A DNA stretch of 64,000 nucleotides from Fimbriosthenelais zetlandica (GCA_977030845.1 OZ365116.1:20832001-20896000); one strand, 5' to 3'; shown: positions 26,515-56,105, counted from the stretch's first letter. Notes: generated from the sequence alone by a model not told the origin. Numbers and translations: made by a program.

Positions 26515-29500
26515 TTATATGTCCATGTGTTCTAGCACCTTTCTTGATTCTTCCCTCTCCTTGCGAACAGCAGCTAATTCTTGTTCCTGCTTCCTCAACA
26601 TTTCCTTCAAGCGGTTAATCCGACCCATGGATGAATGAACGCTGGGAGTGGAATTGGAGGTGGGTTCTGATATCCCAGATGAACCATTCTTCTCCTTAGA
26701 TGAAGTGTTCAGATCGAAATCTGGCAAACCTGATACTTCCATCTCTGCTAGTAATCCACTGGAATCTTTATCAGTGCCAACCCTAACCACTGAGGTGTTT
26801 GAAGATAAGACATCACCATTTTCACCAGTCTTAAACTCATGTTCAGAATCCTCCCAAAAAGAAGAGTCTCTTTCGCTCACGCCCTCTTCTTCATTTCGCA
26901 ATGGTTCATGTTCAGAAGGAACAACTGATGGGACTTCTTTCAATTCAATATCATCACTAGGTTTACATTTTTTTTGTCTGCTATTAACTGATAGGTCGTT
27001 GACTTTTTGGTCTTTCAGTGGTCTACCCCTCAGTCTTTTCCCACCAACAATTCTGGTTGAGGTGAATGGATGAGCTCGTTTCAGATCAGAAGTACACTGA
27101 AGTGCGTCTGCAGCACTACTTTGGTCTTTTCCATGGAGGGATCGCTGGGTGCTACCAATACTAGAGGATGAATTTTGCTCGTCACATTTTTTTGAACTGA
27201 TATCACTATCACTGGGTTTTTGAAGAGTCTCTGTTATTTTTTCTACTCCAGAATCTTGCCCAGACTCTGGTCTCCCGGTCACCAAGCTATCATTATCCTT
27301 CACACACAGTTCAAGTTCTGACATTTTTCCATCACATGTACGTTCCTCAGCACTATCATACATTTCTGTCTTGGCTGGGTCTGTACAACAAATAACAGAA
27401 TTTTTCATTACTTTAGAAACTTTCCTTGGCCTTCCACGTAATCTTTTTTGAATTGCAGGAGGCAATGCCTGATCCCTGCTTTTTGTAGGACAATCTACCT
27501 GAGACTCTTTAGTTTCGTCAGGATGCTCTAACTCATCCTTGTTTGACACAATAGTGGGATTCTCCTCATCAGAGGCACAGCTGCTTGGGTGACTTTCATC
27601 ATCACTATCTAGCAGCGTTTTCTTGTTACGTTTTTTCCGTTTCGTCCTTTCACTTATACTGACTGAATACTTGGTGTAGGCTACAGTGTCTCCTCCACTA
27701 CCAGGCTCTGCGTTCACAACTTGTTTGCGAATGATTAACTTATTTAATTTCGGTGGTTTTCCTCTTGGTTTTTCAAATTCAATTTGATTATTAGTAGACC
27801 CTTGACACATTAGGTTTTCAACTTCATCAGTATCAGAAACACATTTAATTTCACTCTTGCTCATTGCAACTTCCTGAGGTTCACTAATTTGAGAAACAAT
27901 ATCTGTAGCACTGGACTTGGACCTTCCTCGCCTTTTCCTTGTTGAGGTTTCAGGTGTGTCTATTCCACTGTCAATGACATGCTCATTATCATCATCTTGC
28001 TTTGTTTCTGTTTTGACCTGGACGCCATCAATAGTGTCCTCTACTTTACAGGCAGTCTTGGTTTCTCTGGCCTCCTGATTATTTAAACCTGAAGTAATGT
28101 TGTCCTTTGTTTCAGAAGTATTCTCTGCAGACGGTTTTTCTGAAGGATCTGCTTCTGCCTTGATATTATCAGTAATCTTGTTGCTCGTGTTCTCTTCTGT
28201 AGAAGTACCCACTCCAGGATCACCTCCAAACAGATCATCTACATTGAGACTGCTCAAACTGTTCAGCGTCTGACGGACTTTAATATTATTTTTCATCTGC
28301 ATATTGGCTAACTTTTTCAATTCTAATTCTCTCGACCTCTGGCTTGTCCTTGCTCCCCTAGGGCGACCCCTTTTTCTTTTAAAAGGGAAGGTATTGATAG
28401 AATCATTGATGTTAGCACCCAGAGTGTCCTCTCTCTCAGCCAACATTCTGTCTATGGTTTTGCATCTGGGCCTTCCTCTTCCTCTACCTCGACCTCTTTG
28501 TCTGATGGGACTAGAAGTTGAAGGGAAGGCTTGGACAGAGTTATCGCCAGGGCTATTTGGCAGCCTCATTTCTTCAGGTGGAGATTCATTATTCTCAGGC
28601 TGATTATCATGTTGCCTGAAGAGATAATTGCCTCTCCCTCTACCTCGTCTTCTTGGGATGCAAGTGTAAGTAGGATTCGGTAAATTTTGATCATTTACCG
28701 GACCCCCCAGATCGCATCTCTGGGCTTCTAAAAGGTTCCGAACAGTCCTTAACTTCTTTGGTCTTCTTTTTCCGGCAAGAATATCTTTCACAGTTAGGGG
28801 AGCCAAAGTAGATTTGTCTGTCTCTTCCTCTGGTCTGTCTGTTGGTGAATACATAGGTTGGGGGTCAAGCGATAACATTTGTGCGTTCAGTGGCTGAATT
28901 TGAAATGGTTGGGTTAGGAATGGCTGGGGTTTCATGGACAAAGGACGCAAGGGTTTTACTGATTCTGTGTTCAGTGACTGGGGACTCTCCTTTAGTGAGA
29001 TGACACTAGTTATTTTCAAAGCCATTGGTTCACCATCAAGTGTGGACTCATCTTCTGGCCCAAGTGGTTTTATTTTAATTAAATCATTCAGTAATCCATG
29101 TTCATTTTCATTGGGCTGCTCAAAATTCACTGGGGTCTCAGTATGATCATGTTGATTTTCTTGAATTGATGGGTTGTAGTCTACTTGATTTTCCATGGGT
29201 AGGCTTTCCTGTAAATTAGATTCAAGAGTATGTTGATCTGACTGTGAACTAACATCGGAATGTACATCAGGGACAGTATAACTAATTTGGTCTGTAGGAG
29301 AATGTCTTTGACCTTCTGATGAATCAGAAAGTAAAGGAGAGAAAGGTGCGCTGGTGAACACAGGAGGTGTCAAATTAACAAAAAATTCACCAGACACCTG
29401 AACAACAAAATCATCAGAGTCATTCTGAGATACTTCAGGCTTCTCAACATTTCTTAAATCCACAATGATTCCACCTGGCGTACCCTGTCCTTTTGTATCA

Positions 29501-32478
29501 AAAATATTTAGAAGATTATTAGTATTGACTTTGTATAACAAGGCACCGTCTCCCGAGACTTTGGAGCCATCACTGGTGTTGGATCTCTCGTCTTTCTGGG
29601 ACAGACATGTATCAGCTTCAGACGTTGGATCAGTGGTCTCTGATTTCTTCTCTGAGCAGCTCGCTGGTGATTTAGTATTGATCAGAGATGGTAAGAAGTC
29701 TGAATCATTCTTAGATGTTAATGTATCAGTTGGTATTTTAGATGGTGATAATTCTGGGGCAGTAAGGGATGGTGATAATTCTGTAGCACTGACAGTTTTC
29801 TCTGGTGCTTCATCAAGTTGTAAAGTTCGAGATTTTGTTGATGATTCCTCTGCATGTGTCGGTGATTCGCCAGAGTTTGAACATAGCAATGATTCCTCAG
29901 CGCTAAGAGTACGTGATGTGTCCAGGGATGATGATGACAGGTCAGCAGTCACAGTCTGTGAGGAATCAAGGGACGCTGACAAGTCTCCACAACTCTTAAT
30001 CGGTGACAATTCTTTAGCACTGAGAGTCTGTGGTGAATGAGGCAGGGATGACAGATCTCCAGGACATGTTAACATTTCTGAACTTTTGAGATCCACTGAT
30101 GAATCTGTACTTTTTACACACAAGGGTGATTCAGTATTTGTGACAGATGATATTTCTGGAGTTTCTTCAATGTTTGATGATTCTGTGGGTTTTTCATGTG
30201 TTGATAAGTCTGTGGTTTTTTCAGGTGTTAATGAGTCGGTGGTTTTTACAGGTGTTGATGCTTCAGGCGTATTTATAATTGGAGACGGTTCGTTATTTAC
30301 ATCTTGTAATGAAACAACATTTGTCAGGGATGGTTCAGGATCAGTTTCAAGAGATTTTAAACCTGTAGTTACAGGTTGTGTAGGACTTAGAGGTGGTATT
30401 AATTTAGAAGTTTCTACAGGTGCTGACAAATCTGTAGCACTTGGAGAAGGGGTAGAGTCCTCAGCACTGGGGCATGAAGGTTCTGTATTTCCAACAGGTT
30501 CAGGACTTCTTGGAGACAACTGCAGCTCGGCGGTTTCTGATGTTCGGGTCCCCTGATCAGGTTCATCTTTAGGATCCATTCTCTCTTCTTTAGGGGGCTT
30601 AATTCTATTTTCTTCAGTATCCAGTCCCTCTTCCTGATCCTTTGCTTTAGGCTCCATTCTTTCTTCTGATTTCTGAGGAGCTTTCACATCCTCCTCCTGT
30701 TCTTCATTTGGTTTCTCAGGTGCAGGCCCTGTTTCCTTGTCTAGCGTCAACGGTTGATGGTCAAGACAGGCTTTAGACTCCTCAGCACCAACATCTGTAT
30801 CAAGAATATTTGATGTATCCCGAATTTTACACTCATTGTCCTTATCAATAGATGGACAATTTTCCTCCTTCTCCGGGCTACTTATTTTCACATTGAGTCC
30901 CTGCTCTGTTGCATATTGGTCAGTATGTATGTTGCCTTTACTTTCATGATGTTCTTGATTTAACACAGAAGGCTTATTGTCTATGTCAGTCACATCTGTA
31001 GCTTTTATGTCAGTACAGTCTGATGTAGTGCTGCTCATTACTGGGTGTTCTTTATTCAAGCCAAGTTTCCCTGAACAACTCTTCCTGGCTGTGTGTGTCT
31101 TAGCCCCACCATCTTTCTTGGTTATAGCACCAGGCATTATCATATCAGGAAGTATCTCCCTCAGTTTATCATCTAACATGGCCTCTCTCTGTTGGAGATC
31201 ACATTCATCACTGGCCTTTGTACATTCACCAGCAATAACTTCTCTAAATCTAAACTCTATTCCCTTTGAAAATCCCTGTATCATACCAGGAGCATCCTGC
31301 ACAACAATGTCCCTACCATCCCTCTCTCCTTGACTCAGTAGGTGGGACAAATCTGGTACGCTATTTTCTTCACCGTCTTCATTTTCCACTAGGTGTTCCT
31401 TTATGTCTAGGTTGATCTGCAGTTCATAAGCCAGCTCCTGTGCTTCTTTTATATTTTCATCATCTTCAAATGTGGTCTTGTACAGACCAGACTCGGTAGA
31501 TTCAATCTCAGATGTACGACAGTCGTTACTAAATTCTGCCAGACGGTCAACTACAGAAGACATTTCATTTGCTGTGTCAGTGGATGAGGAAGACCGATCA
31601 TCATCTTCAGACTTGTTTGGCTCTAGATGTGCTTGGCTGGTCGTTAGGGGAGGGGCATCAGGAGCAATGGAAGCAGCATCTCCAGTCAAACTAAACACAC
31701 TTCCAATCTTCAATCCTAAGTCATCACTATTATCACTATTATTATCACAGACTTCATTCGGAGAGCTCGGTTCAGGCCCTCTGGCAGAAGTACTCAGTTG
31801 AGTAGTTGTATTGGTAGAATCTGTCAGAAGAGTAGAAATGGCTTTCTTATACCAGGGTTGGTCCTGTTCTTTACTGGCACTCAATAAGGTGGTTCTCAAG
31901 ATACTTTTGGCAGGTGACCTCGGTTGAGCAGTGGGGGTAACTAGTTTGACCCCTGGTTGTAGAATGTTGTTTGAGATCATTCTAGGAGCTGATGCACCAC
32001 TTGTACTGATTACAGAGCTGGGGATGAACAAACGGCCACCAGAAGGAAGAGTTAAAGAGCTATGTGGTCCTGATATGACAGGCACTGTACCCACACTGCT
32101 ACTGACCACTTGTTGTCCTACCTGAGGTGACAACATTCTCACAACCCGGGTGGGAGTTCCACTATTAACAATTCGAGTACCGGGAGGCGATACATTGTTA
32201 TATGTTAATAGTGGTGACATATTCTGAATATTTGGAGCCCTTGGCGTAGACGACACAAGACGTATCACTTTCTTGATCGCTGGCGTAGTAGTGGCAGTAG
32301 TTCTTGGTGGTGGAGTCATCCCTATCGGTAGGAGCAAGGTTTTGGGTATTCCATTAACTGTAGCTTGAATCAGCTGGTATCTCGGTGGTTTAGATGCCCC
32401 TGTAGATGCAGTGGATAATGTGACTGTGTTGGGAACATTGCTCTGCGTCACAACTGTTATTCCTTTTATATTAGCCAT
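26515..32478 (-). CDS. Giant disordered nuclear protein A (1987 aa from the first ATG) with AT-hooks and C-terminal coiled coil; single coding exon
   Basis: 6-kb uninterrupted ORF; first in-frame ATG at 32478 (the track start is a TTG). Four RGRP AT-hook cores, psi-K-x-E motifs (IKAE, VKTE), and terminal MGRINRLKEMLRKQEQELAAVRKERE. Confidence 0.9.
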   Translation of the reverse strand: MANIKGITVVTQSNVPNTVTLSTASTGASKPPRYQLIQATVNGIPKTLLLPIGMTPPPRTTATTTPAIKKVIRLVSSTPRAPNIQNMSPLLTYNNVSPPGTRIVNSGTPTRVVRMLSPQVGQQVVSSSVGTVPVISGPHSSLTLPSGGRLFIPSSVISTSGASAPRMISNNILQPGVKLVTPTAQPRSPAKSILRTTLLSASKEQDQPWYKKAISTLLTDSTNTTTQLSTSARGPEPSSPNEVCDNNSDNSDDLGLKIGSVFSLTGDAASIAPDAPPLTTSQAHLEPNKSEDDDRSSSSTDTANEMSSVVDRLAEFSNDCRTSEIESTESGLYKTTFEDDENIKEAQELAYELQINLDIKEHLVENEDGEENSVPDLSHLLSQGERDGRDIVVQDAPGMIQGFSKGIEFRFREVIAGECTKASDECDLQQREAMLDDKLREILPDMIMPGAITKKDGGAKTHTARKSCSGKLGLNKEHPVMSSTTSDCTDIKATDVTDIDNKPSVLNQEHHESKGNIHTDQYATEQGLNVKISSPEKEENCPSIDKDNECKIRDTSNILDTDVGAEESKACLDHQPLTLDKETGPAPEKPNEEQEEDVKAPQKSEERMEPKAKDQEEGLDTEENRIKPPKEERMDPKDEPDQGTRTSETAELQLSPRSPEPVGNTEPSCPSAEDSTPSPSATDLSAPVETSKLIPPLSPTQPVTTGLKSLETDPEPSLTNVVSLQDVNNEPSPIINTPEASTPVKTTDSLTPEKTTDLSTHEKPTESSNIEETPEISSVTNTESPLCVKSTDSSVDLKSSEMLTCPGDLSSLPHSPQTLSAKELSPIKSCGDLSASLDSSQTVTADLSSSSLDTSRTLSAEESLLCSNSGESPTHAEESSTKSRTLQLDEAPEKTVSATELSPSLTAPELSPSKIPTDTLTSKNDSDFLPSLINTKSPASCSEKKSETTDPTSEADTCLSQKDERSNTSDGSKVSGDGALLYKVNTNNLLNIFDTKGQGTPGGIIVDLRNVEKPEVSQNDSDDFVVQVSGEFFVNLTPPVFTSAPFSPLLSDSSEGQRHSPTDQISYTVPDVHSDVSSQSDQHTLESNLQESLPMENQVDYNPSIQENQHDHTETPVNFEQPNENEHGLLNDLIKIKPLGPEDESTLDGEPMALKITSVISLKESPQSLNTESVKPLRPLSMKPQPFLTQPFQIQPLNAQMLSLDPQPMYSPTDRPEEETDKSTLAPLTVKDILAGKRRPKKLRTVRNLLEAQRCDLGGPVNDQNLPNPTYTCIPRRRGRGRGNYLFRQHDNQPENNESPPEEMRLPNSPGDNSVQAFPSTSSPIRQRGRGRGRGRPRCKTIDRMLAEREDTLGANINDSINTFPFKRKRGRPRGARTSQRSRELELKKLANMQMKNNIKVRQTLNSLSSLNVDDLFGGDPGVGTSTEENTSNKITDNIKAEADPSEKPSAENTSETKDNITSGLNNQEARETKTACKVEDTIDGVQVKTETKQDDDNEHVIDSGIDTPETSTRKRRGRSKSSATDIVSQISEPQEVAMSKSEIKCVSDTDEVENLMCQGSTNNQIEFEKPRGKPPKLNKLIIRKQVVNAEPGSGGDTVAYTKYSVSISERTKRKKRNKKTLLDSDDESHPSSCASDEENPTIVSNKDELEHPDETKESQVDCPTKSRDQALPPAIQKRLRGRPRKVSKVMKNSVICCTDPAKTEMYDSAEERTCDGKMSELELCVKDNDSLVTGRPESGQDSGVEKITETLQKPSDSDISSKKCDEQNSSSSIGSTQRSLHGKDQSSAADALQCTSDLKRAHPFTSTRIVGGKRLRGRPLKDQKVNDLSVNSRQKKCKPSDDIELKEVPSVVPSEHEPLRNEEEGVSERDSSFWEDSEHEFKTGENGDVLSSNTSVVRVGTDKDSSGLLAEMEVSGLPDFDLNTSSKEKNGSSGISEPTSNSTPSVHSSMGRINRLKEMLRKQEQELAAVRKEREESRKVLEHMDI

Positions 32479-33399: not shown

Positions 33400-35850
33400 G
33401 GTGGGTTAGTTCACGTTTCTCCCGCGTGGCGGCATAACCGTTCTAAAGAAAAATGGCTTAAAAGAAACAAACTGTAGGCCTACTGCCCGGGCCTACTGTA
33501 AGCCTAGAAGCTGTTTATGACTTCAACTTTTGTCCATCAAACTCACATCAGAGCTGTTCATTCATCTAGGACTATATATAGACCTCGAGGCGAATGGGGA
33601 TCATCGACCCCGCCCACCATTTTTCCTCTTCTTTTTTTTCCTTTTTTTTTTTTTGGGGGGGGGGGGGGGGGGGCGGTGGTGCTTCCTTAATTTTATCTAG
33701 GCATATGACTATGTTACGCCAAAATAGGCCTAAAGTTTTTGCCCCCGCCTAGAGCTCTTTTCTCAGCTAGGCCCGACCCCGCCAGGCGGCGCCACATCGC
33801 ACATGCATCTGCCCATGTTTTTTTAGGCCTAAGCACAGACTATGGCCTTTAGCAATGTCAAGGAACGAGATAGCTAGGCCTATATATATATAGTTAGGCT
33901 ATAGTTAGGTTATAGGCCTAGGTCTAGCTCCTAGGTCTAAGGCCTAGGCCTACTGGCTTGGGCTGTCCGGGGGTGGGTGTTCAAAAAGCAAAAAAATCGT
34001 GACATCCTTTAGGCCCTATGGATAGCCCCTGAAAGGCACATAATTAAATTTTCTTCACTCTCAATAAACTTTCCTTTAAGAATCGGACTTAAAATTCCAC
34101 GTGAAAAAATACAATAGGCCGAATCAGTTGTGATCAGGAGTTCTTTCCTAACAAATCATAGATTAGGCCTAGACCTAGTCGCCTCCGTAAGAAGGCGGGC
34201 ACAGTCATTGGATGAAAGTAAACTAGGCCTATCAGAGCCTCGCGTCCACTTTCCTTCCTCTCCAACCAACTCCTCTCCCCTGCTCCTTCTCACAGAGCCC
34301 TCGCCACCAGAGCGAGGCTGTTACCATAAATAGAACTAGCGTCTCATTACACACGAGAATGCGCGAGAGTCTACTGCGCACCCAACATCCGGGTAGCGTC
34401 AGTCCGCGCATGCGCATGGCATGACCAAAACAAAGCCTGCCGAAGCACTTCCCCGATAGGTTGCGCGTCTCTACTTCGAGTTTATACGTGGTTAATTGAA
34501 GGTATGTTCTGTATTATGAGTTTGCCTTGAAATATGACTGTCATAGAAGTTATTGAAGGAGTATTGGGGACAGGAAGGGACGAGATAGTGTCATAGTTGA
34601 TGGGAGTAGTGGGCAGGTTCTGAGTCGATTGTGTGCGCAACATCCGCCATGGGCAGTCTCGCCTCTCCACACCTCGCGCTCTCATTGGTCCGCTCCCTAG
34701 CCTCGCTTTGGAGTGGGGTTAGGTTTGAGGCGTCTGGAAGCGCCTGCTCAATGCCTCTAGTTAGCGCCTCTTGATATATTTTGGATGTTATTGAGAGATG
34801 TACAGCGTACTATTGAAAAGTTGTCATGTGGCTGAAGTCTTAAAGGTGTTGTTATTGGAATAGGGCTATACTAGGTCTGCTGAGCACTAGGCTTATCAGA
34901 CTGAGAGTTTAACTTTAAGAATCTATTGTCAGTTTCCAGAATATCTATGATATAGGAATATGCCCATCAGGTTTACAGAAAGACAAATTGATGTCCATTT
35001 GGAGATTTTCTTTTTCCAGGCCAATGTTTTGAATGTCATTTAGGCCTATGCAAGGCCTAAATGTGGGTTATATTTTCAAGTAGGCTCTCACATCACTTTT
35101 TTGGGGGGTGGTGGCCAGGCCCAGGATTGTGTAAATCCCTGTGAAATATTTGGGAGTGAGGGCCTGCTAAATGGGACAGTGGTGGACCTAGAGGCCGGCC
35201 TAATCCTAAGTCACGTTCCCTGATAAGCCTAGGCCAATAGGCCTATGCCTAATAATGCTTAAGAGCGTTCAGTTCCTAGCATGTCTACAGTCTAAGTCCA
35301 GGTCAAGTGAAGGTCAACCCGACGACGACCTATGCATAGCCTAGGCCCACTGCTCAATCTATTAGGCCTAGTCTACTATAGGCCTAGGCCTACTACTAGG
35401 CCTATATGCTACCTATGCCTACCGACACTGTTTTGCTATAGCCTGAGAAAATAAGGCCTATAGGCCTAACCAGTATCAGGAATAGCCCTAGGCCTATATA
35501 TCCCCTTTGCTTAGGCCTATCGGGTATCCATACCCGTCTTCCCCATCCACGTCACAATGTTGACACACTACCCCCACCCACCCCTTCCCCCCTCCCGCAC
35601 ATTCACACACCCGTGTGTGCGTTCTACCACCCATGACCTGAAAGAATCACGTGATTCTTGTGCCCATATATGGCGTGGGCGATGTCACGTGGTCGGTATT
35701 GAGGATGTCGGGCGTTATGAGCGCTGCTGCTGCTGCCGCTGCCGCTCCTCCCATCCCTCCCGCCCATCTACTCTCTCTGTGTGACTCCGTCTATAGGCCT
35801 AGAGGCTACAACAGTCTACTGCAGTTCACTATGTTATCTTGCGGGGAGCA
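33400..35850. promoter_or_regulatory. Bidirectional promoter region of the giant pair: CpG-rich core with NRF1 site, flanked by TAGGCCTA clusters
   Basis: CGCGCATGCGCA at 34405-34416, CCAAT boxes (ATTGG near 34206 and 34684), ETS CCGGAAGTG at 33378-33386 just outside, and 18 perfect TAGGCCTA between 33475 and 35801. Confidence 0.7.
33642..33673. repeat. T13-G19 homopolymer junction
   Basis: 13 T (33642-33654) directly followed by 19 G (33655-33673). Confidence 0.9.
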
Positions 35851-36835: not shown

Positions 36836-39800
36836 ATGCTTGGTGGCAATATTAGGCAAGTGGTAAGCAAACCGGAAGTGAAGATGTCCTCTCCACCTTC
36901 TAGCAAGGGACAAAGTCTGCTATCTATGAATAAAGGGGTGGTATTAGTCCGTGGTCCAGCACCAGTACCACATAAAAATGATCCACGGGTACTTATGGTC
37001 CCAAATGTTCGTCAGAATGTGCCACAGGTATTTGGGAAGAACACAGTGCTTGTCCCAGTGACACAAACACCTGATGGTAAAATGATAGCCACTGGAGCAC
37101 CCGTCCTACCACCTCGACTACAAACCTCTGGTAAAATTAGACCTGATGGAGGAACGATAACAGGTCCAAATGGTCAACAGGTGTTAGTGCCACTACCGCC
37201 TGGTGCCATGGTGAGAACAGCACCTCAAGGAAACAAACCCATAGTTTTAATGTCAGCTAAACAGACAGGCGCGAATAAACAACCAATGGTTATACAAGTC
37301 CCCAAAGGTCCAAATAACCCTGGTGCACGTCCATTATTCATGGTCCCTGTTACATCCTCAGGGGTAGGACAACATGTTTCGGGGGTAGCTGGTAAGGATC
37401 AAACGGTCAAGGTTATTGGGCAAAATAAAGGAGTCAACCTGGTACAAATGCCACTTACTGGTGGTGACAAATCCCGAGCTGCTCAGTCTATGTTTATTCC
37501 AATGCCAGTATCAGGCAAAGGGCCAGGTCAACCTATGGTACTCCTACCTAGGCCACAAAACCAGCCTGTAAAGCAAATTGTGAGACTGCCAGGAGGTACT
37601 TCTAATACAAAATCTGTGATCATCCAGGATCCAAATATGGCTAATCTTCCTAAAGGAGCCAGACTCATTCCTATGTCATCCTCAGTACCTGGAGGTCCAG
37701 TACAACTAGCTTCTTCACATGGTGCTTTTCCGGGTGGAAAGATCGTGTTCATTCCCAATTCAAATGCAGGAGGAATTCCTGGAGGAAAGACAGTTATTAA
37801 TATAGGGGCTTCATCTCAACTGAAGAAACCAAATGTATCCCTTATACAGAAAGTTTTCCCACCGAAAGGTGGAAGGAAACTGTTGTATAAACCGATGGGA
37901 GCATCTGTCAACAAACCTATTAAACCGAAGCCACCTATTCAAACTACAGATTCCTTCTTCAAAACCCCGATAGAAATCAAACCTTTAGAGGAGGAGCATG
38001 ATGATGACTTGGAGAATGTTTTGAGTGCGTTGACTGGAGGAGGGGGCAGTGTCGATCTCATGCCGGTCAACTCTGCTATCACTTCATCACCATCACCTGC
38101 TCCTGTCAATCTTGACCCTGTCCAAATAGATGGACTAGAAAGTATGGGGCTAAAGATTGACTCGGTTTATAGTTTATCATCCAACTCACTGCCAGGAGAT
38201 GGTGAACAGGCTTCAAAAAAGAGCCAAGAGGCAAGTGCAGATACAGGAAAAACATTGAATAAAAAGTCTGAAAAGAAAGATAGTTCAACAGATGGAGAAA
38301 ATAACACAAGTGTTGATGGTGAAAATGTTGATAAAGAAAGAGAGAAGGTGATACAGGAGCCAGAGGTGAATGTGGATAAGAAAGATAAAGAGCCAGATAG
38401 AGAGGAGAAACAAGCACAGACAAATGATGATACAAAATCAGAGGTGATGAATGCTAGAAGAGAGAATACAATGACTGAGGGCGATTCACTGGAGAGCGGA
38501 ATGGATCCAGATGACGACAGACTGAGCGTCGATTCTGATCAAACAGAAGTCATGGATACCTCAGATCTGTATAAAAATGATAACGGCCAGGAAGATCTTA
38601 TAGACCGAGGTGGCAGCTCTGAGAAGGAGGACAGTATAGGGAAGGAGCAGGAGATGGATGACTGTAATGATTCTGATGGGGAAATGAAGGATATACAAGT
38701 ACCAGTTTTGTCGATTGAGCCGCTCTCACCGGAAGACGAACCCTCACAATCAGGAAGCAACGCAAAACCAGAACAGTCTCTCATAGAGACAGAGACTGAG
38801 ATGGAATTCGGGGATCCCCAGAATAACAGTTACAGGCGTATAAGCCTAGAAGATGAGGATCCCAACCTGATGAGAGGGGATTGTCTTCAGGTCAGATTAG
38901 CCCAGCAGGCGGCGCGACAGCTGCAGGAACAGATGAAACAGGAGAGTGAGAACCGGGATATGGTAGCGAGAGAATGGCACATTGAGGAAGATGATGAAGA
39001 AATGGACCAGCCATTTACTCCCTCCAAGGACCTCAATAATACTGCCTCCACAGATGAAGATGGGAGAAAGGAGGAAAGTGAAGAAAAAACTAGAGAAACG
39101 CCGGAGGACAATGAATCCCATCCTTCAGAATCTGATGGAAAGAAAAGTGAGGAAAGCAATAACGACCCAAAGGAAGGTCCATCTAATGAAGAAGATGGGA
39201 GAGGAGAAGGAAAGAAGACTGGTGATGGGAAGAAAGGTGAAGGCGTTATGGATGATGCCCAGAAGGCATTGGTGGCTGCTGCACTCAATGGCTGTGAGGT
39301 AGCCGACTCTGCTGAATTAAATGATATGTTTGATGAACTCATATCTGAATATTTCACAGCTCCTGAGCGGCCTAAGCCGAGTGTACGTGTTCGCGGTATA
39401 GAGGAGTGTAGGGCTGATCTAGATGATGGACCTCAGAGTCTAGTGACGACTACAAAAACGACACCTTCTCTCCACACAGTCACTTCATTGTCACCTTTAA
39501 ACAAGTCACTCCTGTCACAAAAGCCAATATCTATCACTACTCCTTCTGGGCCTGTCACTCTGGTACAGGTTAAAGTTCCAGTGCCTGGTAAGCCTGGTGT
39601 CTCCACAATAAAATACATTCCAGTACAGCTTTCCAAACTTGGTAAAACGGGACTGAACAATGCACCCATGCCACAGTATGTCAAAATAGTTCCTAATACA
39701 ACATCCACAGTTAGCGGGGCAAAACCTATGGCCAGCAGGCTTATACCTACTGTGGCAAACCAGCGTCTGGGTGTGGCATCCAGTTCTGTAGCTTCTAGTT

Positions 39801-42418
39801 CCATCATGAAACAAGGAAAGTCTGTGTTGAAGTTCGTCATAGCACCTGGAAACAGGTTACAACCAAATTTAACTTCATCAGTACTCTCCACAGCTTCAGT
39901 AGTATCCAGACCTACAACTATACCAAGCACTTCTGCTTCTGCCTCATCTACAAAACCATTGAGTAATGTAGACCTCGAGTCCGCTATCAAAAATGCTGCC
40001 CGTAATGTGTTAGGACTTAATCCTGGTAATAAATGGACTGGACTGAAACCTTCAAAGAAACCATCACTTATACCTGGCCGGAATCTGCTGCCTCTGGTTC
40101 AAACTGGAGTGTCACTGGCACAATCCGGGGTTTCACTGGCACAACCTGGGTTTTCACTGGCACAACCTGGGGTCTCACTGGCACAACCTGGGGTTTCACT
40201 GACACAACCTGGGGTTTCACTGGCACAACCTGCATTTTCACTGACACAACCAGGAGTAACGCTGGTGCAACCTGGTGTTTCACTGACACAACCTGGGGTG
40301 TCGCTGGCACAACCTGGGGTTTCACTGGCACAACCAGGAGTAACGCTGGCACAACCTGGAGTATCGCTGGCACAAACTGGGGTGTCAGTATCCTTGCCAG
40401 TTCAAGCACCCACACTGGGAACTCTGTCATCAGCAGACACAAACAAGCCAGACAAAACCATGCATCTACTAACACCGGATAATAACCGAATAATAGTCAT
40501 TCCACCAGGGATGAAGTTGGTTCAAGGTCCTGGAAAAGTTCCTCAGTTAGTCATGGTTAACAAGCCAGACACTGAGCCTTCAACCTCCCTCAGTCCAGGA
40601 GATGTCCTAGCCGCACAACTACAAAGGGAGTGCTCAGTGTTTAATCCCAAAAAGAAAAAGAAGAAAAAGAAGAAGAAGAAAATTAAACTTCCCCCAACCA
40701 AACAATGTTCTGTTGTGTTACGCAGACTTAATATGAAAGTGGTAAAGAAAACACTCAACCTGAAGAGGATTAAACCGTCCTTCCTCTTTGAAACTGTTTC
40801 ACGGCGGCCCATGCGAGGAGCGAAAAGAAAAGCAGAAGAACTGATCAGTAATGATGCCAAACGATTCAAGACTGAGGAGAAATATCAGCCACCCAAATAT
40901 ACAGAGATACCAGATCCTCCCCCACCACCAGTAGACGCACCCACGACCACCAGTGACAGTACATCTCCTAGTAGAGTAAATATAGCCAAGGATTCAGCTT
41001 TATATCAGATCATGTCCCAGCTCCCACCCATCAGGCCAGCTCCTACCATACAACAAGCACCTCTCAATATATTACCATTAAGTCCTGGTGTCCATACGTC
41101 TCCCATGAAGCCACCACCTGGTCCAGTCTCTTTCATGCCCAATCCCCGTACCTCACTTCTTCAGAAATCACCAAAGCCCAGTCCTGTGGTCTCATCACCT
41201 CTACCTAATGTATCACCTTCTCTCATCATGGCTCCAATAAATAGGCTCTTACCACCATCATCAACAACAACAACAGCAGCAGGATCCCGTGAAATCAAAC
41301 TGACTCTGTCCTGCACTACAGCAGCCTCTAGTACCATGCCTGTTAACATCACTAAAGGCTTAAACAGCATTGCTATGTCTATGTCAGGTAGTAATGTTGT
41401 TTCTGGGACGGTCGTATCTCCTTCCCATACAGTGGTTGGACGTGTGGATGCTAACAGACAGACAGGATCCACTGGAGGTAATGTGACGTCACTCCTCACC
41501 TCCACTAATCAACCTAGTCGACCTCTGCCTCCATTACATCCAGCGGGTAAAGTGATGATACCCAATATCCTGACTAGACCTCGTTTTGCCATGCCAACAT
41601 TACAACCAGCCCCAAGACCAGTACAGGGTGTCCGCGGACCCATCCAGCCTCCCACACCCGCGACTGTCATGAAGAGTCCCACCACATTCACCCCAAGGGC
41701 TCCTATAGTCATACAACCTAATGGCACCGGCACAGCCCCGAGACCACCCTTTAGTCAAGGTAACAAACTCGACACCAACAAACGATTCCTCCTGATCAAG
41801 ACAGCCAATGGACAGTTCCTAGTACCGATGCCTGAACATGGTAATCCTATAAACTTAGCAGGTGCTCGACCTGTTAAGACCAATAATTTATCTAACCAGG
41901 CTGAGAACGTGAGTGTCCCAGGTACAGGAGAGACGGCGACGAGCAGCTCATCAGGTGCGTCAGGGACTGCCCAGACTCCCTCCTCACCAATCGTGATCGG
42001 CTCTACTAAAGATACCACTACACCACCCCTCCCTACTCCCCCTCCCCCTCCTCCTCCTCCTCCTCCGGTTAAAGAAAGTAACAGAAGGAAAAGACATGTA
42101 GAATCACCCGTCATAGTCATTAAAGACGAACCTATAGACACTGACTATGATAAGTATGAAAATAGCCCACCACCGAAAGCTAAAACACCAGACACCCAAG
42201 TCAAGATTAAGGAGGAAAAGGAAAGGGAAAAGGAAAGAGAGAAAGAGGAGGAGGATCGGGGAGAGGAGATAGAGGAGGAGGAGGAAGATGCACCCCGAGT
42301 ACCAGCTTCTCTCAATCACATGAAGAGAATAGAAGAACTGAAAGCTCGTCTACGCCAGCATGAAGAGGAGCTGGCTGCACTGAGAAAAGAACGAGAAAAT
42401 CTATCAACCACAAGTTAA
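36836..42418 (+). CDS. Giant disordered nuclear protein B (1860 aa) with heptad repeat, poly-K, PxVxL-like motif and C-terminal coiled coil; single coding exon
   Basis: 5.6-kb uninterrupted ORF with ATG one base after the acceptor ttcttttcag|. P/G/V/Q-rich N-terminus, acidic middle, 11-Lys tract, TKQCSVVLRRL, IKDEP and IKEE SUMO-type motifs, terminal MKRIEELKARLRQHEEELAALRKERE. Confidence 0.9.
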   Translation: MLGGNIRQVVSKPEVKMSSPPSSKGQSLLSMNKGVVLVRGPAPVPHKNDPRVLMVPNVRQNVPQVFGKNTVLVPVTQTPDGKMIATGAPVLPPRLQTSGKIRPDGGTITGPNGQQVLVPLPPGAMVRTAPQGNKPIVLMSAKQTGANKQPMVIQVPKGPNNPGARPLFMVPVTSSGVGQHVSGVAGKDQTVKVIGQNKGVNLVQMPLTGGDKSRAAQSMFIPMPVSGKGPGQPMVLLPRPQNQPVKQIVRLPGGTSNTKSVIIQDPNMANLPKGARLIPMSSSVPGGPVQLASSHGAFPGGKIVFIPNSNAGGIPGGKTVINIGASSQLKKPNVSLIQKVFPPKGGRKLLYKPMGASVNKPIKPKPPIQTTDSFFKTPIEIKPLEEEHDDDLENVLSALTGGGGSVDLMPVNSAITSSPSPAPVNLDPVQIDGLESMGLKIDSVYSLSSNSLPGDGEQASKKSQEASADTGKTLNKKSEKKDSSTDGENNTSVDGENVDKEREKVIQEPEVNVDKKDKEPDREEKQAQTNDDTKSEVMNARRENTMTEGDSLESGMDPDDDRLSVDSDQTEVMDTSDLYKNDNGQEDLIDRGGSSEKEDSIGKEQEMDDCNDSDGEMKDIQVPVLSIEPLSPEDEPSQSGSNAKPEQSLIETETEMEFGDPQNNSYRRISLEDEDPNLMRGDCLQVRLAQQAARQLQEQMKQESENRDMVAREWHIEEDDEEMDQPFTPSKDLNNTASTDEDGRKEESEEKTRETPEDNESHPSESDGKKSEESNNDPKEGPSNEEDGRGEGKKTGDGKKGEGVMDDAQKALVAAALNGCEVADSAELNDMFDELISEYFTAPERPKPSVRVRGIEECRADLDDGPQSLVTTTKTTPSLHTVTSLSPLNKSLLSQKPISITTPSGPVTLVQVKVPVPGKPGVSTIKYIPVQLSKLGKTGLNNAPMPQYVKIVPNTTSTVSGAKPMASRLIPTVANQRLGVASSSVASSSIMKQGKSVLKFVIAPGNRLQPNLTSSVLSTASVVSRPTTIPSTSASASSTKPLSNVDLESAIKNAARNVLGLNPGNKWTGLKPSKKPSLIPGRNLLPLVQTGVSLAQSGVSLAQPGFSLAQPGVSLAQPGVSLTQPGVSLAQPAFSLTQPGVTLVQPGVSLTQPGVSLAQPGVSLAQPGVTLAQPGVSLAQTGVSVSLPVQAPTLGTLSSADTNKPDKTMHLLTPDNNRIIVIPPGMKLVQGPGKVPQLVMVNKPDTEPSTSLSPGDVLAAQLQRECSVFNPKKKKKKKKKKKIKLPPTKQCSVVLRRLNMKVVKKTLNLKRIKPSFLFETVSRRPMRGAKRKAEELISNDAKRFKTEEKYQPPKYTEIPDPPPPPVDAPTTTSDSTSPSRVNIAKDSALYQIMSQLPPIRPAPTIQQAPLNILPLSPGVHTSPMKPPPGPVSFMPNPRTSLLQKSPKPSPVVSSPLPNVSPSLIMAPINRLLPPSSTTTTAAGSREIKLTLSCTTAASSTMPVNITKGLNSIAMSMSGSNVVSGTVVSPSHTVVGRVDANRQTGSTGGNVTSLLTSTNQPSRPLPPLHPAGKVMIPNILTRPRFAMPTLQPAPRPVQGVRGPIQPPTPATVMKSPTTFTPRAPIVIQPNGTGTAPRPPFSQGNKLDTNKRFLLIKTANGQFLVPMPEHGNPINLAGARPVKTNNLSNQAENVSVPGTGETATSSSSGASGTAQTPSSPIVIGSTKDTTTPPLPTPPPPPPPPPPVKESNRRKRHVESPVIVIKDEPIDTDYDKYENSPPPKAKTPDTQVKIKEEKEREKEREKEEEDRGEEIEEEEEDAPRVPASLNHMKRIEELKARLRQHEEELAALRKERENLSTTS
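40100..40393 (+). repeat. Coding 21-bp minisatellite, 14 units encoding Q-P-G-V-S-L-A
   Basis: Consensus CAACCTGGGGTTTCACTGGCA; 13 near-complete units plus a divergent last unit (QTGVSVS). Confidence 0.95.
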
Positions 42419-43721: not shown

Positions 43722-45632
43722 TTAACCCATGGCGAACTCATAAGCGGCGGCGTACTGGCCGGTGACATGATGGTAGAGCTGTCTCTCTATATCAGCCAGC
43801 AGACCACTCGCTCCTATACGGAATAAATCAGGTTTAGTCCACGCGTCGCCAAGTTCCTCCTTCATCATTGAGAGCCAAGTGAGCGAGTCCTTAGCACTGC
43901 GGATACCGCCTGCTGGCTTAAAACCAACCTAGGAAACATTAAAACAAAAAATTATTATAAAATTCAGACGATCATATTGAGGGAAATTAGGAAGAGAAAT
44001 TGTTTAATTATATATAAAAGCTGGAATAGTTAACGCACCACATAGCCAGTCCTGTCTTTATATTCCCGGATAGCTCGGACCATGACTAGCCCAACGAGAA
44101 GAATGGCATTCACTCCTTCCTTTCCAGTGGAAGTCTTAATAAAATCGGCTCCTGTAAAAAGTCATTCAAAATCAAAGTTAAATGCCTAAACCAGTCTTTT
44201 CAGAGGATTCATTCTGAATTTAAACAAGAACAATAGTTTCCTTACCTGCCATCATACAAGCCATACTGGCTTTATACACGTTGGTGAGTGAACCTAGCTC
44301 GCCCGTAGCCAGGATGGTCTTCATATGAGCCGAGCCACACGCTTTCTTCATCTCCTTCACCTCCTCGTACACGCCTAAAGACGAAATGAAATTACAAATT
44401 TTAAGGCATGGTATTTTAGAATAGGTATAGAGTAGGCAATCAATAGAGAAAAAAATAAAGTGTCAAGTATATACCTCGCCAATCACCGGCTAGGGCTAGA
44501 GCCCTGTTGATGACAATATCTATTTCTGCCGCTCCATCCTCCAACGCCATCCTGATCTCTTCTAGTCTGGTTTTCAATGGAGTCTGGCCAGATGGGAATC
44601 CAGTAGCCACTTAAAAGTTAAAATAACATGACATTGATTACAAATATCAAACAGTCATTTAAGAAGAGTACAGGTACAATAAGACCACTTTGACATAACT
44701 CCAATTTGCTAGAAATATTTAAATATAAGAAGCCCAATATTAGCATACCAGAAGCTACAGGGACATGAGGCCCCCCTGCCTCTTGGAGATATCGCTTGGC
44801 ATCGGCGACACGGCTGGGGTAGACACAGACTGCACCCGTGGTTATCCCTGAAATATTACAAAATATGGCATCAAATGCGTTGGTTATACTGGCTCCATTT
44901 CTATGATAATTACGTATGCGATTGATTTTCTACAAATTGCAGCATTATGTATGCCCATATAAGTATACTTGCCCATATTTTCCATGTTCATGGCTTTGAG
45001 GAGGTCTGGTCTAACAGCATTCTTAGCCTTGTAGCACAGACGTTGAACATTGCTAGCCGTGTCATCTCCACTCAGTGTAGTTAGATCAATACACGTCACA
45101 GCTCGTAACAACCAAGCAGCCTGTATATGTAAGGAAAGACAAAATGATTATTTTTTTATTAATTGTTGGGATAAAGTATGTCATCCTCTCTGCCTGCATT
45201 TAGGCCAACAACCTACCTGCCATTGTTTCTTCACAGTCCGACGAGTTCCAAGTGTCTCGGCCCTACGTTTGACAGCCGGGAAGTTGATATTCACATGTTC
45301 AATCCAACTGGCATCTTGTCATGTAAAGAAAAATGTATGTCACATTTGAATTTGTGAAGGCAGCCTGCGTATTATGATAACATAAGGCCATAAGGCATAG
45401 GTGAAAAGTGACAGAAAAGTGGGCGGGGCAAAGTCCATAAACATGGCTCAAGGCCAAGCGGAGAGCACATGTGGGTCAATTATCTCATAATTCAGATAGA
45501 GACATGCAAATATTTCACAAAATACTAAGGAAGACCATCATTCTCAAGGTTTATGAGATGATAAACACGTTTTCTACCCAATTTAAAATGTAAAAACTCA
45601 CCGAAATCCACGCCCGGATTCTTTGGACCCAT
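43722..45632 (-). CDS. DERA: Deoxyribose-phosphate aldolase, 8 exons, intron 3 GC-AG
   Basis: Spliced product MGPKNPGVDFD...AAWLLRAVTCIDLTTLSGDDT...GAVCVYP...ATGFPSGQ...GAAEIDIVINR...MKTILATGELG...ADFIKTSTGK...VGFKPAGGIR...FRIGASGLLADIERQ...MG*. A possible upstream in-frame ATG lies at 45638. Confidence 0.98.
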
Positions 45633-53971: not shown

Positions 53972-56105
53972 ATGTATTGGACCAGGGTTGTACTGTTATC
54001 TGCCGCTTTGATTTCCATCCAGTTCTTCAGGACAGAAGCTGAGATTTTTGGTAAAAATCTTTATATTATTTGAATGACTGCATGTATAGGCTATGCATAC
54101 ATTTATGTACATTTTCACTAACAAAAGTCTGTCCACTTACTTTGGAGTAAAATCTCATTTAGACAGACTGTAATAACATGGTATTTTACTCCAAAGATAA
54201 AGGTGGACAAGCTATATATGTGTCAGAAAGATATCATGTTATTGTTTCATTTTATGCAGGTCGGTTTGTACAAATTGGCGACTTTCATTATGACCCAACC
54301 TACGAGACTTTCGGAAATTCGTGTAACACAGAAATTCCTGAAGAACAAAGGAAGCCCTACGGCAACTACAACTGTGATGCTCCTCTGAAATTAGTAGAGA
54401 ATGCCATCCATGAAGCCAATATACTGTCTAACTACCAAACTGATTTTGTGATGTGGGCAGGGTAAGGCAGATTGTTATTTAGTCCGTTTAAATTAACTTT
54501 AACCTTCACAATATCACAATACATCATAATTAATAACATTTTATATCAAAATTTATCAACGTTTCAGAGATTTTGCACTTCATGTACGAGAGGAGAATGT
54601 GTTAAATGTGGATCAAGTACTGGACATTCTCAATGCCTCCTCTATTCTCATCCGTGGCGGGATTCATCAAGACACCCCCATCTTTCCGATGCTTGGCAAC
54701 CACGACTACTTGCCCAAAAGCCAGCTCCCTACTACAGGGGGCCTCTATCAGCGAATAGGCGACATATTCTGTCCTATATTTGAACTTGAAGGAAACGGAT
54801 GTGACGACTTTGTCAAAGGTATCAAAACAGAAAGCCTTGTAGAACATTCAAACTAGAGTATTGTACAACCATAGGGTAAAGCATTGTACCAATGATTTCT
54901 TATTTTACAGCTGGATACTACTCTCGCCTAATAGATGACAAACTTCTGCTTTTGATAACCAACTCCAACCTTTATGACAGGAGCAACAATGAAACTCTCG
55001 CCACGGACCCTGACCCAGCCGGACAGTTTGCCTGGATGAGAAGTAGGCTTGAAGACGCAAGAAACAGAGGTTATAGGGTGAGTGACATTATAGGTTATAT
55101 GTATGTAGGTTGTTGTACAATGTTTGCCAAAATTTAATGGTTGAATAGTATAACCACGACGCATGATGGTTGAATTTTCTCAGTTTAGAATGTGACGTCA
55201 CTCTGATTAAATAAAAACTAATACATTGCCTCTCTCACAACATCCCATATAGGTACATGTCTTCGCACACATACCCCCAGGCTTTTTTGAAGGGGCCAAA
55301 AACGTGATGTGGTTCAAAAACCAACACAATCAGATTTTCAATGAGATTATCAGGGACTACTCGGACATCATCATTGGAGTATACAGTGCTCATGCTCATA
55401 CTGATAGTTTCAGGATCTACTATAATGAAGGTGACTAACATAGTCTAATGTCTTAGACCTGATTTCAATTCTTTGCAATTGCATGTTTGCTTTTTTCTTA
55501 GTAGATTTTTCATCGTTTAATCTTTAATTCCAGAGAAGAAGCCAGTTGTACCACTCTTGATAAGTCCAGCTGTGACCCCTTGGAGATGGCCTGGAGGTGA
55601 TGGGAAGACTCCACCCAGAAACCCCGCCTTACGTGTTATTACACACCAGATCACAGGCGACATGGAACTGATAAACTATGACCAATATTACCTCAACCTG
55701 GAACGAGCAAATGACCCCACTAATACGGTGATCAGATGGGACAAGGAGTATGGCTTCACTTCTTATGAAGGTGCCGCCAATGCAAGTGCTGCATCTATGC
55801 ATGAGGTAGTGGAAAACTTCAAATCCTATGCCAGTACAGGCTTTCACAAATATTTTGAAAGGACTAATGTATTGATTATGAACAATCATGACAAGCCCAG
55901 CGGACTTCGGTATACGTGTGACATGGCCTGCAAGGAACAGCACATTTGTGCCATCAAGAATCTGGACAAAGAGGAGTACAGGAAATGCTTAGATACAATG
56001 AACCTATCTTCATCGTCTTCCATCCTGACAGCAGGCTATCGTCAGATTCTGACAAGCTTCATGTCATTGGTTGCTCTAGTGCTTGCTACCAAGATTCATA
56101 TTTGA
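53972..56105 (+). CDS. SMPDL3: Acid sphingomyelinase-like phosphodiesterase (SMPDL3A/B-like), secreted and probably GPI-anchored, 6 exons
   Basis: Signal peptide MYWTRVVLLSAALISIQFFRTEA; metallophosphoesterase motifs GDFHYD, WAGDF, LGNHD, AHIPPG, SAHAHTDSF, SPAVTP; C-terminal Ser-rich spacer plus hydrophobic tail. All exon phases are consistent. Confidence 0.92.

Follow-up and report, generated by a model that had tools for sequence, protein, structure and literature searches.

Two neighbouring genes in the window (the whole stretch of 64,000 nucleotides that was analysed), here called A and B, encode large, predominantly disordered proteins that stand an even chance of being divergent LRIF1-type HP1 adaptors. 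LRIF1 is a vertebrate adaptor that links HP1 to SMCHD1. For the HP1 arm, an LRIF1-like function of B is reasonably supported by structure prediction, in which a short motif of B docks onto the HP1 chromoshadow dimer. Membership of A and B in the LRIF1 family is not demonstrated, and standard profile statistics leave common descent unproven. To our knowledge, LRIF1 has been regarded as a vertebrate protein. The LRIF1 literature that we found concerns mammals only, and both the Pfam LRIF1 family and the LRIF1 clusters found with a protein language model are chordate.

RESULTS

Two head-to-head paralogues

A and B lie head to head, ~4.4 kb apart, and the positions of their features are collected in Table 1. 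A splice acceptor (ttttcag) stands immediately 5' of the ATG of B, and the orthologue P0001 opens with the same MLGG. The protein encoded by B is rich in P, S and V, with W+F+Y+C amounting to 2.5%, and that encoded by A carries six AT-hook-like RGRP/GRGRG sites. The two open frames lie in DNA of ~40-49% G+C, and an internal 21-bp tandem repeat is present in the ORF sequence. A Pfam scan of A and B found no domains of any kind, and the internal core blocks of B were predicted to fold as isolated helices (mean pLDDT 55) and form no domain. A B-type HMM recognised A with E = 2.8e-5 (calculated for one sequence), and an HMM of the HP1 block of B found no counterpart of this block in A. P0001, P0002 and P0003 keep the region around SPVIVIKDEP of B as V[IR]VK[DE]EP-D-GY[DN]K[YH]E, and it resembles a SUMO-interaction motif together with a sumoylation consensus, both putative here. 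The neighbouring genes (TRIM-NHL, DOP1, CIMIP3, DERA and ASMase-like) differ from those presumably flanking human LRIF1, and synteny gives no support.

Table 1. Positions of genes A and B and of their conserved elements, counted from the first letter of the window
Feature	Position	Strand	Remarks
Gene A	26515..32478	-	paralogue of B; single ORF, 1987 aa
A terminal helix SSMGRINRLKEMLRKQEQELAAVRKEREE	26548..26634	-	exact R-L-K triplet
A N-terminal motif RYQLIQATVNGIPKTLLLPI	32323..32382	-	residues 33-52; YQLIQATVNGIPKTLLLPI at 34-52
Gene B	36836..42418	+	one uninterrupted coding exon; ORF, 1860 aa
B block MGLKIDSVYSLSSN	38144..38185	+	common to A as LGLKIGSVFSLTGD
B core blocks DPNLMRGDCLQVRLAQQAARQLQEQM and AQKALVAAALNG...DELISEYFTAPERP	38858..39373	+	family-specific, without LRIF1 counterpart
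B run of 11 lysines	40649..40681	+	residues 1272-1282, just N-terminal of the HP1-type motif
B extended conserved block IKLPPTKQCSVVLRRLNMKVVKKTLNLKRIKPSFLFE...RGAKRKAEEL	40682..40855	+	residues 1283-1340, surrounds the HP1-type motif
B HP1-type motif TKQCSVVLRRL	40697..40729	+	residues 1288-1298; C-S-V-V-L core at 40706-40720
B conserved island NKRFLLIKTANGQFLVP	41777..41827	+	HKYLLIKTSMGQYLVP in P0002
B SPVIVIKDEP	42104..42133	+	hydrophobic VIVI stretch, then I-K-D-E
B terminal helix PRVPASLNHMKRIEELKARLRQHEEELAALRKERE	42293..42397	+	LRIF1-like pattern at 42329-42388

A small family with three LRIF1-type signatures

Does the pair have relatives elsewhere? Among 1.84 billion proteins, an exhaustive profile search (E <= 0.001) found three relatives only, P0001, P0002 and P0003, and no LRIF1; within the genome, A and B are the sole two family members. 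Word-based searches with the C-terminal part and the core blocks of B matched P0001 and P0002 only, in a length window of 1023-3255 aa, because of which shorter relatives could not show. The searches revealed no vertebrate counterpart other than LRIF1, and the core blocks of the family retrieved only these same two proteins. The members measure 1514-1987 aa, are each encoded by one uninterrupted coding exon and are almost wholly disordered. Orthologous uninterrupted ORFs in two other assemblies show sharp identity islands within a divergent background. At least five further conserved blocks characterise the family, among them GLKIDSVYSL, GDCLQVRLAQQAA, DELISEYF, LLIKT-NGQ-LVP and VIKDEP-D-GYDKYE.

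The preliminary description saw the LRIF1-type features as split between the two paralogues. This holds in this genome, and the orthologue P0002 combines all three signatures in one chain, in the order of LRIF1 and with a similar terminal placement (residues 6-26, 1053-1063 and 1480-1501 of 1514).

The three LRIF1 strings quoted in the preliminary description proved genuine, each matching the Pfam LRIF1 model PF15741 (745 positions): the N-terminal string at model positions 5-25 (35.6 bits), the HP1 segment, its query lengthened by a few residues, at 536-555 (26.4 bits), and the tail string at 720-742 (34.5 bits). A literature search found no paper that prints these strings.

Searches for a link to LRIF1

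The profile match that had been proposed as a check did not appear. Searched with E up to 10, PF15741 matched neither A, B, their 100-aa ends and P0001-P0003, nor ten excised motif segments of 21-27 aa. The same model run against the whole genome also gave no match, in a search whose controls were uninformative because they were prokaryotic. HMMER filters hide scores below roughly 10-18 bits, and a weak similarity to the LRIF1 profile is thus not excluded.

A language-model search of 7.7 million clusters with the last 593 aa of B placed LRIF1 (PF15741) clusters at ranks 1-3, with a score of 0.86 that lies below the 0.9 line of the tool (153-156 shared features) and that the tool rates as a lead only. 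This ranking is independent of the motif reasoning in the preliminary description. PHF21B followed at a lower rank (0.78). The N- and C-terminal parts of A gave no LRIF1 signal in this search, only generic matches or none; those of the N-terminal part were generic disordered proteins such as EMSY (0.88) and USF3.

A predicted HP1 ligand in B

The TKQCSVVLRRL motif lies where it had been reported, and translation places it within the plus-strand ORF of B. B, P0001 and P0002 share its block TK-CSV-L-RL without change, although the rest of these proteins is only 35-56% identical. V1293 and L1295 fill the V-x-L positions of a chromoshadow ligand and align with the V-x-L pair that LRIF1 needs for HP1 binding; indeed, an LRIF1 V-x-L mutant loses HP1 binding. 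Compared as a string, the LRIF1 HP1 segment matched the family at chance level (P = 0.6-0.9), with its best matches elsewhere. The lysine run just before the motif, kept in P0001 and present as KKKKRKRKKKRK in P0002, is likely to serve as a nuclear localisation signal.

We predicted the complex of B residues 1280-1320 with two copies of the chromoshadow domain of Mytilus HP1, which is three substitutions away from the exons of this genome. The score was 0.81 against 0.01 for the best control; the controls, in which two peptides and a receptor of unrelated origin were used, all gave 0.00-0.01. Of 78 solved complexes, 51 reach the mark applied to this score, as do 2 of 108 mismatched pairs; the mark is not calibrated on peptides and can be passed through memory of solved chromoshadow-peptide complexes. 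Contact agreement between runs was at least 84%, and partner pLDDT at least 75. In the model, V1293 sits on the dimer axis and contacts residues 109 and 112-115 in both chromoshadow copies; residues 1305-1318 of B also touch the domain. The docking proposed earlier for the CSVVLRRL peptide and the HP1 chromoshadow dimer is thus predicted in canonical geometry, and in silico B has a PxVxL-type HP1 chromoshadow motif.

Terminal helix and N-terminal motif

The C-terminal ends, ...RIEELKARLRQHEEELAALRKERE in B and ...RINRLKEMLRKQEQELAAVRKERE in A, both fit the pattern I-x2-L-K-x2-L-R-x2-E-x2-L-x3-R-K, as had been described, and are 55% identical to each other (E = 8e-6). AlphaFold2 predicts the terminus of B as a single helix (pLDDT about 95). 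In each of the five family proteins, the LRIF1 tail string finds its best local match at the tail, in register and without gaps. It shares 10 of 22 residues with A (P = 0.0005 in shuffles), and P over the five tails ranges from 0.0005 to 0.09. When the shuffles preserve the heptad pattern, P is 0.002 for A, 0.02 for P0003, 0.03 for P0002 and 0.18 for P0001, the tail of B alone falling short of significance (P = 0.12); for the family mean, P = 0.017. By these sequence statistics the likeness to the LRIF1 tail appears to exceed chance modestly. Family tails, used as segments against Pfam, also weakly match unrelated coiled-coil families (E = 0.02-0.5). When the folded tail was compared with Swiss-Prot models by Foldseek, the only matches were generic bZIP/Myc-like helices (all E > 3), an uninformative outcome.

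An LRIF1 mutant in the R-L-K triplet loses SMCHD1 binding. This position reads R-L-K in A, E-L-K in B and A-L-K in P0002, with L-K invariant. In mouse LRIF1, the mutated residues V567 and R732 are ~165 residues apart.

The resemblance of the N-terminus of A to that of LRIF1, also pointed out earlier, stands within the first 60 residues but is lost in whole-protein searches, where the match is not significant. In A, the LRIF1 N-terminal string finds its best match at RYQLIQATVNGIPKTLLLPI. A search confined to those 60 residues gives P = 0.011 for A and 0.031 for P0002, whose motif is VYQMVNLNVNGSVKKVLMALP (residues 6-26), and the motif is degenerate in B (P = 0.18) and P0001 (P = 0.36); the motifs were chosen, and the search was confined to protein ends, after the data had been seen.

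HP1 and SMCHD1 are encoded in the genome

An HP1 gene lies at G000:C13:27073031-27073398. As the preliminary description had asked of the genome, SMCHD1 is encoded as well, on the minus strand of G000:C21 at about 30173000-30214500, and has a GHKL N-box, an S5 domain and a hinge. The S5 domain scores 68, 51 and 37 bits (PDB 6MW7, E = 8e-20), and the hinge, whose region is spread over many exons, matches PDB 6N64 with E = 3.5e-21 and 3e-9. Generic hinge and GHKL models matched only SMC1-4, MLH3-like, HSP90, MORC3 and PMS-like exons and had suggested that SMCHD1 is absent, which the SMCHD1_S5 model overturned.

DISCUSSION

The preliminary description proposed divergent LRIF1-type proteins outside vertebrates. 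The predicted docking, the presence of SMCHD1 and HP1, the tail and the collinear P0002 speak for this proposal; the missing profile link speaks against it. Of the three outcomes named there as jointly contradicting it, namely no profile match to LRIF1, no SMCHD1 in the genome and no predicted or observed binding, we encountered the missing profile match, whereas SMCHD1 is present and HP1 docking is predicted.

If A and B are LRIF1-type adaptors, B would be anchored on HP1-marked chromatin by C-S-V-V-L, predicted to insert between the two C-terminal strands of the chromoshadow dimer. The terminal helix, with the family pattern I-x2-L-K-x2-L-R-x2-E-x2-L-x3-[RK]-[RK], may recruit a partner, purely by analogy most plausibly the SMCHD1 of the same genome. 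The undivided form of the family would be that of P0002, with a YQ...NG...LP motif, a V-x-L motif past a basic run and a terminal amphipathic helix. From such a form, a local inverted duplication may have given A and B: A, which carries AT-hook-like, putatively DNA-binding sites that either A gained or B lost, would have retained the N-terminal motif as well as the R-L-K form of the tail and would have lost the HP1 block, and B would have retained this block.

Was the ancestor of A and B a true pre-vertebrate LRIF1? We consider this quite possible, although we would stop somewhat short of an even bet. The main alternative, which we hold to be doubtful, is convergence, i.e. a lineage-specific family of disordered HP1-binding proteins without LRIF1 ancestry, in which the tail would bind a partner other than SMCHD1 or would dimerise, possibly A with B. 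Evolution can readily produce a V-x-L ligand and a short terminal coiled coil, and the likeness would accordingly reflect shared function (an HP1 ligand) and composition. The predicted HP1 docking fits convergence equally well, and the 55% identity between the tails of A and B would suit a pairing element. The searches gave no profile link to LRIF1, the similarity of the HP1 segment is at chance, large conserved blocks of the family are missing from LRIF1, and the tail matches other coiled-coil families at similarly weak levels. Yet three separate signatures all indicate a single vertebrate protein, whose order and terminal placement they share; the tail of A is in register with LRIF1 at P = 0.002 against heptad-preserving shuffles; and LRIF1 takes ranks 1-3 among 7.7 million clusters.

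Improbable in our view is a third reading, by which A and B are generic disordered nuclear co-regulators with no connection to HP1 or SMCHD1, CSVVLRRL belongs to a region that serves nuclear localisation or holds some other linear motif, and the docking is an artefact of memorisation. In its favour, the complex test is uncalibrated for peptides, motif position -2 is C instead of P or L, and the language-model matches of the N-terminal part of A are of the EMSY and USF3 type. Against it stand the TK-CSV-L-RL block, invariant over deep divergence, the docking controls of 0.00-0.01 against 0.81, and the central valine, which lies on the axis of the dimer just as the known binding mode has it. That the ORFs are chance open frames or decayed repeats instead of genes, as the lack of Pfam domains, the low-complexity composition and the 21-bp tandem repeat might suggest, is effectively refuted by 1860 and 1987 open codons at ~40-49% G+C, by the orthologous uninterrupted ORFs with sharp identity islands in two other assemblies and by the splice acceptor before a conserved start codon.

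We have here an invertebrate with a complete SMCHD1. A deep LRIF1 relative, if true, would provide a handle on the ancestral role of the HP1-SMCHD1 link beyond X-inactivation and D4Z4. Descent from a pre-vertebrate LRIF1 would make the HP1-LRIF1-SMCHD1 silencing axis (X-inactivation, FSHD) older than vertebrates, and would offer a natural separation of its parts, with the HP1 anchor in B and the N-terminal motif, R-L-K tail and AT-hooks in A; the extra blocks of the family would then mark functions of the ancestral LRIF1 that vertebrates have lost or in which they have gone unrecognised. Should the likeness prove convergent, this would still be a family of giant disordered proteins whose function resides in a few invariant short motifs, and the motif of B is a concrete, testable candidate HP1 ligand.

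Comparison with known systems

PHF21A/B- and EMSY-like co-repressors share with A and B a composition rich in V, T, P and S, and the AT-hook of PHF21 proteins is matched by the AT-hook-like sites of A; unlike them, A and B have no PHD, ENT or other defining domain, and the matches look compositional. The PxVxL ligands of TRIM28/KAP1 and CAF-1 p150 resemble B in the V-x-L peptide, which in B is predicted to lie between the chromoshadow C-terminal strands. TRIM28 itself is reported to carry a PxVxL-type motif, but its RBCC, the CAF1A of CAF-1 p150 and the like were not found in A and B by Pfam, and the likeness is one of motif only.

In LRIF1, the main basic run comes after the V-x-L motif. In the family, the main basic run precedes the motif, which has the form C-S-V-[VR]-L. 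The family proteins are also about twice the size (1514-1987 aa against 745 model positions), the distance from motif to tail is about 540 residues in B against ~165 in mouse LRIF1, the extra conserved blocks have no LRIF1 counterpart, and the gene is duplicated in this genome, with AT-hook-like sites in A. LRIF1/HBiX1 (PF15741) and the family nevertheless agree in being largely disordered nuclear proteins whose C-terminal part holds a V-x-L motif, in B a predicted chromoshadow ligand. The family also has candidate counterparts of the YQ-h-h...[ND]G...LLP motif at the N-terminus of LRIF1 and of its short terminal helix, the latter with the pattern given above for A and B, which contains the L-K of the R-L-K triplet needed for SMCHD1 binding by LRIF1, and both partners of LRIF1, HP1 and SMCHD1, are encoded in this genome.

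Genes A and B and their relatives

Translation of the window returned all the peptides that the preliminary description had quoted for the paralogous genes A and B, at their described places. The entire B coding sequence lies in one exon after an untranslated leader, since a ttttcag splice acceptor directly precedes its ATG. Both proteins are rich in P, S, T, V and E, with W, F, Y and C together making up just 2.5-3.8% of residues, and a Pfam scan found no domain in either. The tail is the sole match between them by BLASTP (E = 8e-6); an HMM of three B-type proteins, run against A as a one-sequence search, matched a GLKI-SV-SL block (E = 2.8e-5) and the tail (E = 1.4e-8), the two blocks being collinear. 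Judged from these alignments, A and B are paralogues, and a genome-wide family-profile search found no further member in the source genome.

Among 5.8 billion proteins, a word-based search picked out one relative, P0001 (1896 aa; 56% identity across the full-length alignment). With HMMER, 1.84 billion representatives were searched exhaustively; this yielded only P0001, P0002 (1514 aa, E = 3e-16) and a fragment, P0003, and did not reach LRIF1. The family is very sparsely sampled. P0001 and P0002 are each encoded by a single ORF; no large divergent neighbour accompanies P0002 on its 1.4-Mb contig, and the best matches of P0002 in the source genome are collinear pieces of B.

In the B-type alignments, conserved sequence occurs only in sharply bounded islands: a degenerate motif at the N-terminus, TPIEIKP...GLKIDSVYSL, VLSIEPLSPEDE, DPN-RGDCLQVRLAQQAA, DELISEYF-PERP, a block of a K-run with TK-CSV-L-RL...NLKR-K-FLF, LLIKT-NGQ-LVP, V-VK[DE]EP-D-GYDKYE and the terminal helix. 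The internal blocks were predicted to fold as separate helices and not as a domain, and the tail of B as a single confident helix.

Features of the window and loci of the source genome assembly (G000; C13, C21 and C27 are contigs)
Feature	Position	Strand	Remarks
Gene A	26515-32478	-	single ORF, 1987 aa; ~4.4 kb from B, opposite strand
Gene B	36836-42418	+	uninterrupted ORF, 1860 aa
C-terminal part of B	40697-42418		last 573 codons of the ORF
Tandem repeat in B	40100-40387	+	21-bp unit, 13.7 copies, 81% matches; encodes heptad QPGVSLA, residues ~1089-1184
SPVIVIKDEP in B	42104-42133	+	just upstream of acidic run and terminal helix
A-B intergenic region	33600-35800		T-run and G-run tract at ~33630-33675; many TAGGCCTA-like palindromes
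Neighbour genes	1614-3719 (-), 9662-11812 (-), 22931-23383 (+), 44220-45111 (-), 55557-56105 (+)		five stretches besides A and B
Canonical HP1 gene	G000:C13:27073031-27073398	-	loci L014, L015; chromoshadow domain intron-split
SMCHD1-type gene	G000:C21 ~30173000-30214500	-	41 kb, loci L017-L025
MORC3-type GHKL exon	G000:C27:22692107-22692280	+	locus L012; PDB 6O1E, E = 3.5e-26; 1.8 Mb from the window, on the window's contig

The neighbours comprise a TRIM-NHL protein (single ORF with RING, B-box and NHL), a large DOP1 exon (TPR_DOP1, 410 bits), CIMIP3, an acid-sphingomyelinase-like C-terminal exon and, read by eye only, exons resembling deoxyribose-phosphate aldolase. Six AT-hook-like RGRP/GRGRG sites in A (residues 1279-1820, e.g. 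KRKRGRPRGA and KRLRGRPRKV; B has none) suggest direct DNA binding by A. In B, the SPVIVIKDEP segment, conserved in P0001-P0003 as V[IR]VK[DE]EP-D-GY[DN]K[YH]E, resembles a SUMO-interaction stretch joined to a sumoylation consensus.

Predicted docking of B on HP1

Against the second exon of the HP1 gene, Mytilus chromobox protein 1 shows 95% identity and a Capitella fragment 88%, a hint that the window comes from a mollusc or some other lophotrochozoan. As receptor we used the intact Mytilus chromoshadow domain P0004, which differs from the source genome's HP1 at three positions. Two P0004 copies with B 1280-1320 gave a complex score of 0.81 against 0.01 for the best control. In a calibration on non-peptide cases, 51 of 78 solved complexes attained that mark, as did 2 of 108 mismatched pairs; because similar complexes are already solved, this pass measures likeness to known ligands, not binding. 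The docking proposed for the CSVVLRRL segment was in this way predicted in silico. Runs share at least 84% of contacts, with partner pLDDT of at least 75. In the model, V1293 touches residues 109 and 112-115 on both chromoshadow copies, and L1295 and L1298 touch strand 68-73, which is the known PxVxL geometry as predicted; residues 1305-1318 give extra contacts, in line with the extended conservation. On this modelled interface, the HP1 arm of the interpretation is well supported in silico.

Each QPGVSLA unit of the B repeat contains P-G-V-S-L, a literal PxVxL consensus, so that the array might be a multivalent set of weak HP1 ligands. It is missing from the orthologue P0001; at the matching position, P0002 shows a degenerate repeat of QPGVKS type.

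An SMCHD1-type gene in the source genome

Generic hinge and GHKL models (SMC_hinge, HATPase_c_3) matched only SMC1-4, MLH3-like, HSP90, MORC3 and PMS-like exons and overlooked SMCHD1. The SMCHD1_S5 model recovered three successive exons on contig 21 (68, 51 and 37 bits), verified against human SMCHD1 (PDB 6MW7, E = 8e-20). Around them lie a GHKL N-box exon, many Ig-like middle exons and hinge exons matching mouse SMCHD1 (PDB 6N64, E = 3.5e-21 and 3e-9); by exon content, the gene is complete. Together with the HP1 gene, both proposed partners exist in the source genome.

Relation to LRIF1

The three LRIF1 strings quoted in the preliminary description are genuine: as short peptides they match the Pfam LRIF1 model (745 positions) at 5-25 (N-terminal motif, 35.6 bits), 536-555 (HP1 segment, 26.4 bits) and 720-742 (tail, 34.5 bits). 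P0002 carries three such signatures in one chain, with the same order and the same ends as LRIF1: VYQMVNLNVNGSVKKVLMALP (residues 6-26), TKQCSVRLKRL (1053-1063, preceded by a basic run) and RIEALKARLREHEEQLKELRRQ (1480-1501 of 1514). Their union in P0002 indicates that the split between the source genome's paralogues, which we found as described, is secondary. A would have retained the YQ motif as well as its R-L-K tail and lost the HP1 block, an HMM of which found no counterpart in A; B would have retained that block, its N-terminal motif being degenerate.

In all five family proteins, the LRIF1 tail finds its best local alignment at the protein's own tail, where it aligns over its full length, in register and without gaps. 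Under a null that did not mix core with non-core heptad positions, P was 0.002 (A), 0.029 (P0002), 0.025 (P0003), 0.12 (B) and 0.18 (P0001), and 0.017 for the family mean; for the N-terminal motif, searched within the first 60 residues, it was 0.011 (A) and 0.031 (P0002). The regions were picked after the data had been seen, which counts against the link. In a language-model search with the last 593 aa of B, three LRIF1 clusters ranked first (153-156 shared features), at a score of 0.86 that is only a lead by the search's own calibration; the ends of A gave no LRIF1 signal in this atlas.

Could the family instead be a convergent, lineage-specific HP1 ligand? The Pfam LRIF1 profile matched no family protein or excised segment, nor anything in the source genome; the LRIF1 HP1 segment as a string is similar at chance level (P = 0.6-0.9), and the family tails also touch unrelated coiled-coil families (E = 0.02-0.5). 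Foldseek with the tail gave an uninformative match set. We consider convergence a serious though doubtful possibility, and a divergent LRIF1-type adaptor an evenly balanced proposition; the remaining probability falls to weaker readings. Homology to LRIF1 is plausible from the collinear terminal motifs, the tail statistics and the language-model ranking, and demonstrated by no profile method. The original proposal of divergent LRIF1-type proteins is partly supported: the HP1 arm (in silico) and the partner genes stand and the profile match does not, and since that match was sought and not found, A and B are not filed as LRIF1 family members.

LRIF1 binds SMCHD1 via a C-terminal coiled coil and HP1 via a PxVxL motif (PMC4628070, PMC10307901); HP1 binding is lost in the V567D/L569E mutant, and SMCHD1 binding in the coiled-coil mutant R732E/L733A/K734E (bioRxiv 10.1101/2024.11.18.624083). 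In the preliminary alignment, the V-x-L pair corresponds to V1293 and L1295 of B. At the R-L-K triplet, A likewise has R-L-K, P0002 has A-L-K, and the other three proteins (B, P0001 and P0003) have E-L-K. On the partner side, the hinge G-x-x-G-G motif of the source genome's SMCHD1 resembles the glycines that Brideau et al. mutated.
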